From contig BAAFSQ010000043.1 of NCBI GenBank assembly GCA_054661495.1, positions 23,893 to 55,892 on the forward strand: a stretch of DNA of 32,000 nt. The letters are read 5' to 3'. This DNA comes from Zygophlyctis sp. KS116. Its lineage: Eukaryota > Fungi > Chytridiomycota. Within the stretch, counting starts at the first letter, position 1. Each line of letters opens with the position of its first letter. A model generated the notes under the pieces. The model worked only from the letters and a program-made list of their open reading frames with translations. It did no database searches and was not told the DNA's origin. This document shows, in pieces, positions 22,891-25,207 of this stretch. Position numbers and translations under genes: made by a program.

Positions 22891-23670
22891 TTAAATCTCT
22901 GAATTCAAAAGATCAGACTTGACAGTTGGAAAATCAATTGTCAATTCTCTAAATGCATAATCAAAATCAGTTGTTGAGCCCAGTTGAGTATCGAGGGCCG
23001 GGGTAGCTAGTCCGAAATCAATCAGTTTAATTCCATCTCTTGTAACTATTGCATTGAGAGGGGATGCATCATTATGAGCATAGCCGGTTTCAAATGCAAA
23101 TGTAACAACTGCTTCTAGATATTCTAATGATAATTTTGTCAAGAGTTGTCTTTCTTTAGGAACCGATGGATTAATTGATTCTAAAACAGAATGCAAAACA
23201 GGTCCTTGTAAATAATCCTGAACGACTACCAACAAATCATCATCGGAACATATATACCGATCAAGTCTTTTTAAAACGGTAATTTCTCTAAGAAATGCTT
23301 CCCTTGGATTACAAAATGTAGAAAAAGGATTGTAAATCTTGACGACAACTTTCTTGTCAAGAGTTTCTCCAATGAATGCAGATCCTTGACTTCCTTGGCC
23401 AAGTCTGGATTTCAATACAACTACAAGACTACCAATGATGATTTGTTTTCCACAAACAGACTCTGAATCATTCAGAATTAGACTTAGTAGATCAATAGGA
23501 GATAGGGAGTGATTGGCTGGATGTAAACTAGTCTTTATTCCATCAAAGTTGAAGGAAGTTTCTACTATTTTGATTGCTGCATTGGAAAATGTTGATAATG
23601 CATTGGTTTCAAGTCCAGGGAATCTAGCTAGAAGAGATATCAATAGTAGATCGGAGATCTTTGTATACAT
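22891..23670 (-). CDS. Intronless atypical protein-kinase-fold protein with a truncated C-lobe and a possible signal peptide
   Basis: LGQGSQGSAF Gly loop, VVVK, FLREI helix-C Glu, HNDASPLN catalytic loop and IDFGLA. It ends about 40 aa after DFG without an APE motif. Confidence 0.8.
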   Translation of the reverse strand: MYTKISDLLLISLLARFPGLETNALSTFSNAAIKIVETSFNFDGIKTSLHPANHSLSPIDLLSLILNDSESVCGKQIIIGSLVVVLKSRLGQGSQGSAFIGETLDKKVVVKIYNPFSTFCNPREAFLREITVLKRLDRYICSDDDLLVVVQDYLQGPVLHSVLESINPSVPKERQLLTKLSLEYLEAVVTFAFETGYAHNDASPLNAIVTRDGIKLIDFGLATPALDTQLGSTTDFDYAFRELTIDFPTVKSDLLNSEI

Positions 23671-23884
23671 TTAAAAAAGCCGCCACAAGTCATGTGTAAC
23701 AGCAATATCTGAGACAATGATCGGGTCACAATGAATCTCTGATAATAATGGCTATATTGACTCTATTATTTTTTAAGAAAGTGGATACAAGATCTTATAT
23801 TGTTGTATTAATGAAGAGTGGAAGAATGTGTACCGCTAGTCAAAGTTTTTAGAATTCAATAATAGATTTTAATCATTTGCTTCT

Positions 23885-25207
23885 TTAAAGATATAATGCT
23901 AATAAAGTAAATCCAAATTTAAAGCTTGCATCAGTCATTGAGTAGAATAATTCTGATTCTAGAAATCTGAATACAGTTAATAGTCCAAGTGTCCATGTAA
24001 GAACTAGAATAGAAAACATCCAAAATATACTTTTTTGAATTCGAGAGATTCTAGTCTTTTTGTCAAGATCAGAGTCTAGATTTGGAATAAATTGATTCAA
24101 GTCAATCAATATGCTTCCAATTAGAAATATTGCAAATCCTCCAAAGATTTCGCATAAAGGAGTAAATTGTCCAGATGATATAAGTAGTGATAGAATGAAA
24201 ATTGGAATTTTGAGTCTTGTGTTACTCTCTAAAGGTTTTCCTGTTCTTATGAGGGAAGAAATTTCAAGTAAACATGGTAGTGAGACATTCCAATCAATAA
24301 ATCTAGCAGTCTGAATTGGAATACCTAATGGTCCATATAATTTGGGTGTAATTCCAAGATAAAGAAGAGAATATACCAATACTGAAAAACTGTTGATTCC
24401 AAAGAAAATAATTGCTAATGTTCTTTTAAAGATTGATTTACTCATTAAATCTAATCTTAATTTTATAAAACATACAAGATTGGTATGAAAAACCAGCTCC
24501 AATACTTAAAAGACACAATGTTACTAAATTTAGAAATTTATAGTCTTACAGAGATATAATGAATTCAAAAATTCAAAATTCAAATGACTTCCTCTAAATC
24601 CGAATATACCCATAAATACCAGAGCACAAAGTGAAGCTAAACCAAAGACTAGTCTTTTGTGAAAAATATGGACAACATCAAGTTTTGAATCAATATTGGG
24701 CGTCTTTTTAACATCAGGGATCGCATGTACAAAATCATCCCATAGTTTAGGATAGTTATTTAATAGTGAGACTGCTACAATTGGCAGTTGTTCAATCACT
24801 CTACTCTTAACTTGATCTATTTGTTTGATCACTTTTCCTTGAACTTGCTGTAATTGTTTAATCATTTTACTCTCAACGGTTTCCGGCACCTTGCGTCCTT
24901 TCAATGTAATCATTGGGAATTTTATCCGAAATATGTTGATCCATCCCATTGTAATCCATGCGAATGGATTTAATATGTAAAACCACTGAAATGATATCCA
25001 TGATATCGGATTCAATAATTTAAGTGAATATTTCTTATTTTTGCTTGATGATGCAGTTGATGCCATTGTCTTTTGACTCCAGTAAGTCAACTTGTGCCTT
25101 GATGCCGGACATTTACAGTCTGCACACTTAATTGCCCCATCATTAGCATATTCTTGACAATCGCATGAATTACAAGCTCCTCTAAAATAAGAGTCTTTAT
25201 CCTTCAT
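23885..25207 (-). CDS. Microbial rhodopsin of the fungal RhoGC/CyclOp type lacking the guanylyl cyclase domain (423 aa)
   Basis: Exons 25207-24550, 24523-24476 and 24450-23885 (introns of 26 and 25 nt; 1272 nt total). N-terminus MKDKDSYFRGACNSCDCQEY..CADCKC....H, helix C ARFIDWNVSLP and helix G YSMTDASFKFGFTL with DxxxK. The stop follows helix G. Confidence 0.88.

Follow-up and report, generated by a model that had tools for sequence, protein, structure and literature searches.

A cyclase-less opsin gene on contig C43

The window analysed here is a 32,000-nucleotide (nt) stretch of DNA from the chytrid fungus Zygophlyctis sp. KS116 (contig BAAFSQ010000043.1, hereafter C43). Its minus strand carries, at 23885-25207, a gene for a predicted opsin related to the rhodopsin-guanylyl cyclases (RGCs, also called RhoGC or CyclOp). 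Two open reading frames (ORFs), A and B, join through two short introns and a hidden 48-nt exon, and the three-exon splice keeps the frame, giving a computed coding sequence of 1272 nt that translates into 423 amino acids (aa) with one TAA, at its end (Table 1). This gene model had been proposed in an earlier reading of the same DNA (the original prediction), and every coordinate in it proved correct, with GT..AG introns and a restored frame. The landmarks named there are likewise in place: the ARFIDW motif of helix C at residues 284-289, the DASFK motif of helix G at 409-413, a TAA directly after Leu423, 10 residues past the Schiff-base lysine Lys413, and a spacer of 214 bp before the next gene. 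Database searches and fold predictions were run exon by exon; the joined protein was used locally for length, frame and hydropathy.

The splice model is supported without RNA evidence, because the same solution recurs in other organisms. The 48-nt micro-exon was recovered in all five species tested; in four relatives (L017, L018, L019 and L027) intron 1 occupies the same position and the micro-exon lies between GT..AG introns of 23-26 nt. In a further relative, L022, intron 1 is absent and the coding sequence runs through uninterrupted. In a strain about 97% identical to the window (L021) the micro-exon is 100% identical. Introns of 24-28 nt are usual in the Zygophlyctis genome, examples being three in the part of RGC1 (contig C71) that encodes the cyclase. 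Such tiny introns, of 23-28 nt in the genes examined, are found throughout the genome. A run of 10 N at L022:1976-1985, in the last opsin exon, with a duplicated GAATGGATG on both flanks, is a scaffolding gap in the public contig and no biological feature.

The stop codon appears to be the true end of the protein. There is no GT donor from the Lys codon to the stop, and no INASVEE-type linker motif follows helix G. Matches to the class III cyclase family PF00211 occur only on contigs C71, C219, C80 and C199, with none on C43, and the polypeptide carries no linker followed by a class III guanylyl cyclase. L021, which comes from a different ENA assembly, is collinear with window positions 28466-23169 over 5.36 kb at 96.8% identity, stop included; an assembly break near 23880, which would have refuted the original prediction, is therefore absent. 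Within this alignment the exons are 98.3-98.4% identical with a single indel of 12 nt, in frame, whereas the 3' spacer, at 95.3% identity, has indels of 4, 1, 1 and 10 nt, and all four lengths would break a reading frame. Past the stop, the sequence thus evolves as non-coding DNA.

Table 1 Features of the opsin gene and its surroundings in the window.
Feature	Position	Strand	Content	Basis
ORF A	24530-25207	minus	225 aa	
ORF B	23885-24502	minus	205 aa	
Exon 1	24550-25207	minus	aa 1-219 + 1 nt; cytosolic N-terminal region and TM0	
Intron 1	24524-24549	minus	26 nt, GT..AG	
Micro-exon	24476-24523	minus	48 nt; encodes TM1	
Intron 2	24451-24475	minus	25 nt, GT..AG	
Exon 3	23885-24450	minus	TM2-TM7 of rhodopsin domain; TAA stop at 23885-23887	
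3' spacer	23671-23884	minus	non-coding, 214 bp to next ATG (23670)	
Cys-rich motif	25094-25183	minus	aa 9-38, RGAC-x2-C-x-C ... C-x2-C-x-C-x4-H	alignment with full-length RGCs, C38 paralog and environmental relatives
Trp-rich segment	24929-25018	minus	aa 64-93, tandem 'LNPxxWI'	alignment and hydropathy; below transmembrane threshold
TM0	24593-24652	minus	aa 186-205, followed by conserved GFRGSHLN	hydropathy maximum 2.38; kept in orthologs
Helix C motif	24290-24304	minus	R285-F-I-D288-W289 (bacteriorhodopsin R82, D85, W86)	HMMER alignment to solved rhodopsins
Helix F	23993-24016	minus	F381-W388	HMMER alignment to solved rhodopsins
Helix G motif	23918-23932	minus	D409-A-S-F-K413 (bacteriorhodopsin D212, Schiff-base K216)	HMMER alignment to solved rhodopsins
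Protein-kinase-like ORF	22891-23670	minus	short neighbouring ORF	Pfam Pkinase, E 1.4e-9

An eight-helix protein with a remodelled pocket

Hydropathy resolves TM0 and seven further helices, eight transmembrane (TM) segments in all, with a positive-inside pattern consistent with cytosolic N- and C-termini. The rhodopsin domain is divergent. ORF B passes the Pfam Bac_rhodopsin profile (PF01036) narrowly, at 25.3 bits against a cut-off of 24.6 (E 1.3e-5, profile positions 32-220), and a sequence search of the PDB returned marginal matches to solved rhodopsins only (E 0.4-0.8), with the motifs aligned. In hhalign, a profile built from ORF B together with its relatives matched that of rhodopsin-cyclase opsin domains (98.6% probability, E 8.7e-16, 178 columns, 21% identity). 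We found no RGC opsin domain in the PDB, where the best matches for RGC1 were to rhodopsin phosphodiesterase. AlphaFold2 gave a mean confidence score (pLDDT) of 49.8 for exon 3 and 40.5 for exon 1, too low for a fold search, and an ESM Atlas search with exon 1 returned no usable match.

Numbered by bacteriorhodopsin (BR), the pocket is part conserved and part rebuilt. Six residues are kept: R82 (R285), D85 (D288, a Glu in RGCs), W86 (W289), W189 (W388), D212 (D409) and K216 (K413). W182, Y185 and P186 are replaced by F381, L384 and V385, and T89 by Ser; the helix-C Cys of RGCs is lost, and the position of the proton donor D96 holds no carboxylate. The equation of W388 with W189 rests on a Trp-to-Lys spacing of 25, which the relative L025 shares while retaining P-x-x-W; hhalign and MAFFT prefer another helix-F register, and Y185 and P186 are unconserved in either. 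Taken as a whole, the residues agree with a protein that binds retinal, does not pump and has a remodelled pocket.

The N-terminal region preceding TM0 holds the Cys-rich motif and the Trp-rich segment. The latter is limited to the sub-clade of the window protein, with no counterpart in L022, L025 or the full-length cyclases, and it may form an interfacial or hairpin membrane anchor, since its hydropathy stays below the TM threshold. One relative, P0004, has an extra LNPxxWI..W unit there. Between this segment and TM0 lies a heptad-like insert rich in K/Q/V/I repeats (aa 113-140; 24788-24871, minus strand); present in the 97% strain and missing from the closest ortholog, P0001, it is species-specific.

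Relatives, selection and expression

Beyond the window, the gene has relatives in six or more other lineages. Searched exhaustively with exon 3, phmmer returned six proteins only, and a profile search added three more; a scan of metagenome contigs with the clade profile added nothing beyond L019, which was already known. Environmental orthologs are 48-62% identical over exon 1. Over exon 3, P0021, P0022 and P0023 are 67%, 65% and 64% identical to the window protein, with 15, 19 and 19 residues from Lys to stop; L022 (~34%) has 13, and L025, a clade member at ~34%, has 16. The original prediction had called for orthologs with the same early stop, and these provide them, at 13-19 residues: the Asp-x3-Lys motif and the early stop are kept by every relative whose 3' end lies on a contig. 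The helix-G Asp and Lys are invariant in 7/7 complete relatives, down to ~34% identity. The helix-C pocket is more variable, with R82 changed to His and D85 to Asn in L022, and W86 to Gln in L025 and P0007.

Against four species, the ratio of nonsynonymous to synonymous substitution rates (dN/dS) is 0.09-0.20 for exon 1 and 0.17-0.28 for exon 3, with dS near saturation. Metatranscriptome contigs from four studies match 23932-24086, 24173-24430 and 24745-25034 at 95-100% identity, and their single-nucleotide differences comprise three synonymous and two conservative changes; transcription of the window gene is thereby suggested.

From purifying selection, conserved orthologs, the conserved stop, the independent assembly and the lack of a cyclase match on the contig, we conclude that the gene is maintained: it is not debris, and no full-length cyclase has been mis-modelled here. 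The original prediction had likewise seen a maintained paralog. The gene belongs to a clade of short opsins that purifying selection has kept in several uncultured freshwater chytrid-like organisms.

A more distant cyclase-less RGC-like opsin from another organism, P0009 (L023:33-1019), has the Cys motif, but its Schiff-base Lys is replaced by Val. The stop codon overlaps the beginning of the following called gene, whose product has a ribosomal S15 domain.

Four rhodopsin genes in one genome

The searched assembly is incomplete (12.7 Mb in 1175 contigs, ~35% GC) and seems to come from freshwater metagenomes. Its set of RGCs and its tiny introns point to an uncultured chytrid-like fungus from fresh water, and an ESM Atlas search with a neighbouring NOT2 domain placed it no more closely than Eukaryota. 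The assembly contains four rhodopsin genes: two on C71, one on C38 and the window gene. The full-length paralogs that the original prediction proposed to look for are the C71 pair, RGC1 and RGC2 (L015:2853-6545, minus strand), two complete rhodopsin-guanylyl cyclases in tandem on the same strand, ~135 bp apart. Both carry the full class III catalytic motifs (metal, substrate with Glu/Cys, and transition-state), and since all three are intact in both genes, the pair are probably homodimer-type RGCs. C38 (L016:4169-5240, minus strand) encodes a second cyclase-less opsin of the RGC family, with the N-terminal Cys motif, R-Y-V-E-W in helix C, the helix-G Lys and a stop ~30 residues past it.

The N-terminal module ties the four together. 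The pattern M-K-D..R-G-A-C-x2-C-x-C-x-E-Y/F ... C-x2-C-x-C-x4-H has exactly four occurrences in the genome, and each stands at the start of a rhodopsin gene, the two full-length rhodopsin-cyclase genes included. The regions upstream of the four genes, inspected by eye, share no obvious motif. In this incomplete genome, which was not searched exhaustively, no contig has both an Ion_trans and a cNMP_binding match, and no BeCNG1-like channel was identified.

A further link is an intron. L022, L025, RGC2 and the C38 gene have in common a phase-1 intron in the codon of BR position 185, which has been lost from the sub-clade of the window protein. This intron, the exclusive N-terminal module and the profile match argue for kinship of the window clade with the RGCs, and the original prediction of a RhoGC/CyclOp family member without linker and cyclase is borne out by the shared module, the profile match and the absence of PF00211 from C43.

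In part, the tree of rhodopsin domains goes against the original prediction, which placement outside the RhoGC clade would refute: the window clade, on a long branch, comes out as sister to the cyclase-bearing RGCs and not among them, and family kinship rests on the module and the intron. This tree (17 rows, LG+C20) has a single outgroup, a histidine-kinase rhodopsin; its rows do not include the named references (the Be, Ca and Rg RGCs, NeoR and GpNeoRh), and it does not relate the clade to the RGC(a), RGC(b) and NeoR branches of the literature. The C38 opsin and P0020, an environmental protein of 337 aa encoded by a complete single ORF, nest inside the RGCs (94/91). With these two inside and the window clade outside, one genome holds two independently derived cyclase-less forms, and the loss of the cyclase in C38 is independent and probably younger.

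Comparison with known systems

The closest parallel was described by Broser et al. in 2023: GpNeoRh and GhNeoRh, NeoR-like rhodopsins without cyclase or linker from two Rhizophydiales, which carry Gln for BR W86, Asn for W182 and Ile/Val for Y185 (PMC10622942). GpNeoRh binds retinal despite its remodelled pocket, absorbs at 630 nm, is fluorescent and shows no photocycle; the authors called such genes 'gene fragments' of mysterious origin and function (PMC10622942). The view of the original prediction that no member with this architecture had been characterised is thus overtaken, given that GpNeoRh was characterised by spectroscopy. Our literature search found no later paper on either protein.

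Like the window protein, both are RGC-derived opsins without linker or cyclase, with a remodelled pocket in which Y185 has become aliphatic, and their genomes, like that of the window, hold same-strand clusters of homodimer-type RGC genes. The differences lie in the pocket, the N-terminus and the genomic setting. GpNeoRh has Gln at BR 86 and 212, whereas the window protein keeps the equivalents of D85, W86 (W289) and D212; W182 is Asn in GpNeoRh and Phe here. L025, a member of the window clade, does have Gln at BR 86, as GpNeoRh does. By published residue numbering, and thus compared by description, the window protein has ~150 more N-terminal residues than GpNeoRh and GhNeoRh, the Cys motif among them. 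Neither of the two turned up in the protein searches made with the window gene and its relatives. The genes for GpNeoRh and GhNeoRh have an RGC(b) gene as neighbour, on the other strand, whereas the window gene is on C43 and the RGCs of its genome on C71.

With the homodimeric RGCs (BeRGC/CyclOp and CaRGC, and here the C71 pair) the window protein shares the MKD..RGAC Cys motif, TM0 plus seven helices, the Schiff-base Lys, the helix-C pattern R-x-x-acid-W, a short F-G loop and, in the wider clade, the codon-185 phase-1 intron. Unlike them it lacks both the coiled-coil linker and the class III cyclase, its counterion is Asp instead of Glu, it has lost the helix-C Thr-Cys and the helix-F W-x-x-F-P, it carries the Trp-rich N-terminal insert, and it is only ~21% identical over TM2-TM7. 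With no cyclase domain, the protein cannot itself make cGMP in response to light. In CaRGC, residues 1-43 are dispensable for catalysis, and residues 44-139 are essential and rearrange upon illumination (Fischer et al. 2021, PMC8575461).

NeoR resembles the window protein as a divergent RGC paralog proposed to modulate a catalytic partner. NeoR, however, keeps linker and cyclase and pairs through them, and the window protein has neither; BR positions 85, 89 and 212 form a Glu/Asp/Glu triad in NeoR and are D288, S292 and D409 here. A rhodopsin-only gene from the CyclOp family has also arisen by gene fission in Homolaphlyctis polyrhiza (Galindo et al. 2022, PMC9616733). There a separate cyclase gene lies 547 nt away, whereas C43 has no cyclase and the orthologs of the window gene have unrelated neighbours.

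Neighbouring genes

On the same strand as the opsin gene lie a P-rich gene and the kinase-like gene of Table 1. The kinase-like protein, of ~260-280 aa, is conserved between the window (22891-23670) and L027:2287-3138. It has the Gly-loop, the VxK Lys and DFG, with H-N-D in place of HRD, and its ORF stops ~40 residues past DFG, so it is without a canonical C-lobe; a NOT2_3_5 gene begins within ~60-140 bp. In L022 and L025 the gene downstream of the opsin is an SNF2 helicase and not the kinase-like gene.

A proposed non-enzymatic light sensor and its rivals

Taking its parts together, we favour, with a probability of roughly 60%, the reading that the window gene encodes a 423-aa, eight-TM opsin of the RGC/CyclOp family that lacks a cyclase, binds retinal and has a non-enzymatic sensory or accessory role. 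On this reading the protein would still bind retinal and act as a non-transporting, non-enzymatic photosensory or accessory component of the light-sensing apparatus of the zoospore. Its output would not run through cyclase-cyclase pairing; most likely, output or targeting would operate through the N-terminal module, or through contacts of the membrane domain with RGC1 or RGC2. The N-terminus is a likely route for output because the Cys6-His motif, the Trp-rich segment and the juxtamembrane helix before TM0 make up the only sizeable soluble part.

Several observations weigh against this reading. The helix-F pocket residues are replaced, and GhNeoRh, with its altered pocket, is colourless (PMC10622942). 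Chimeras have shown that the cyclase domain sets the homo- versus heterodimer function of RGCs (PMC10622942), which weakens a NeoR-like partnership and with it the original idea of a heterodimer partner, as the window protein has no such domain. In the tree, the long branch of the window clade lies outside the clade of all cyclase-bearing RGCs plus C38/P0020 (support 86/86), and its placement relative to the outgroup has support of only 64/36. An RPE65-type carotenoid oxygenase was not found in the genome, which is incomplete and was not searched exhaustively. Finally, none of the RNA-library contigs reaches across an intron or the stop, and they could stem from DNA carry-over, so splicing and the 3' end rest on comparative evidence.

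Some of these points would suit a different protein, a membrane protein derived from an opsin that no longer uses retinal and has a structural, chaperone-like or targeting role in eyespot membranes, comparable to the Lys-less fungal opsin-related proteins. In its favour are the replacement of BR W182, Y185 and P186, the variable helix-C pockets of L022, L025 and P0007, the loss of the Lys in the distant P0009, the missing RPE65 homolog and the colourless GhNeoRh. We nevertheless consider this unlikely: none of the seven complete clade members has lost the Lys or its Asp partner, GpNeoRh binds retinal in a pocket altered even further (PMC10622942), and the full-length RGCs of the same genome need retinal, so that a source of it must exist.

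The tree invites another interpretation, in which the window clade is an old, separate lineage of eight-TM fungal opsins and not a recent truncation, signalling through its Cys- and Trp-rich N-terminal module. It could then be a non-enzymatic class of sensory rhodopsins of zoosporic fungi, or descend from an unfused pre-CyclOp opsin. The clade does branch outside all cyclase-bearing RGCs, and the more recent, independent loss seen in C38 and P0020 looks quite different and nests inside them. We regard an origin of this kind as unlikely.

That the opsin could be a stand-alone sensory rhodopsin with the adjacent kinase-like protein as its transducer would fit the kinase-like ORF 214 bp downstream on the same strand, an arrangement also seen in two relatives, the 97% strain and a species at 65% identity. 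However, in the latter (L027) the entire neighbourhood has the gene order of the window (P-rich gene, opsin, kinase, NOT2_3_5), and the two genes are therefore adjacent by common descent; an SNF2 helicase takes the downstream place in L022 and L025, and there is no fusion, the spacer evolving as non-coding DNA. We think such a pairing very improbable.

More improbable still is a pseudogene, the decaying fragment of a former rhodopsin-cyclase gene. The 'gene fragments' label given to its published relatives (PMC10622942), the long rhodopsin-domain branch and the marginal Pfam score would suit decay, yet the frame is intact over three exons with dN/dS of 0.09-0.28, the micro-exon has the same length in five species, the sole coding indel is in frame, and the gene is found across those six or more further lineages.

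Least probable of all is that the gene encodes a complete rhodopsin-cyclase, its cyclase exons having escaped notice because they lie further downstream, are trans-spliced or fell to an assembly error: the stop region is not covered by RNA contigs, but C43 has no PF00211 match, no donor and no linker motif follow helix G, L021 is collinear across the stop, and six orthologs stop at the same place with unrelated genes downstream.

We thus rejected a cyclase exon further downstream, a break in the assembly and a fusion to the kinase, on the PF00211 scan, the L021 collinearity, the spacer indels and the L027 neighbourhood.

Implications for the RGC family and the zoospore eye

The window gene extends a known but unexplained group of cyclase-less RGC relatives and does not found a new one. 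Previously, such relatives had been described only as 'gene fragments'; here they are shown to form a family that purifying selection maintains in several chytrid-like lineages from fresh water and that retains the retinal lysine and the RGC-type N-terminal module, and a single genome holds two independently derived cyclase-less opsins beside two complete RGCs. The conserved N-terminal Cys motif is not needed for catalysis in CaRGC and appears to act independently of the cyclase, for example in targeting or assembly. Following the lead of GpNeoRh, fluorescent or sensory tools based on retinal gain new candidates in the short-opsin family. For the organisms themselves, the fungal zoospore eye probably includes non-enzymatic opsin components.

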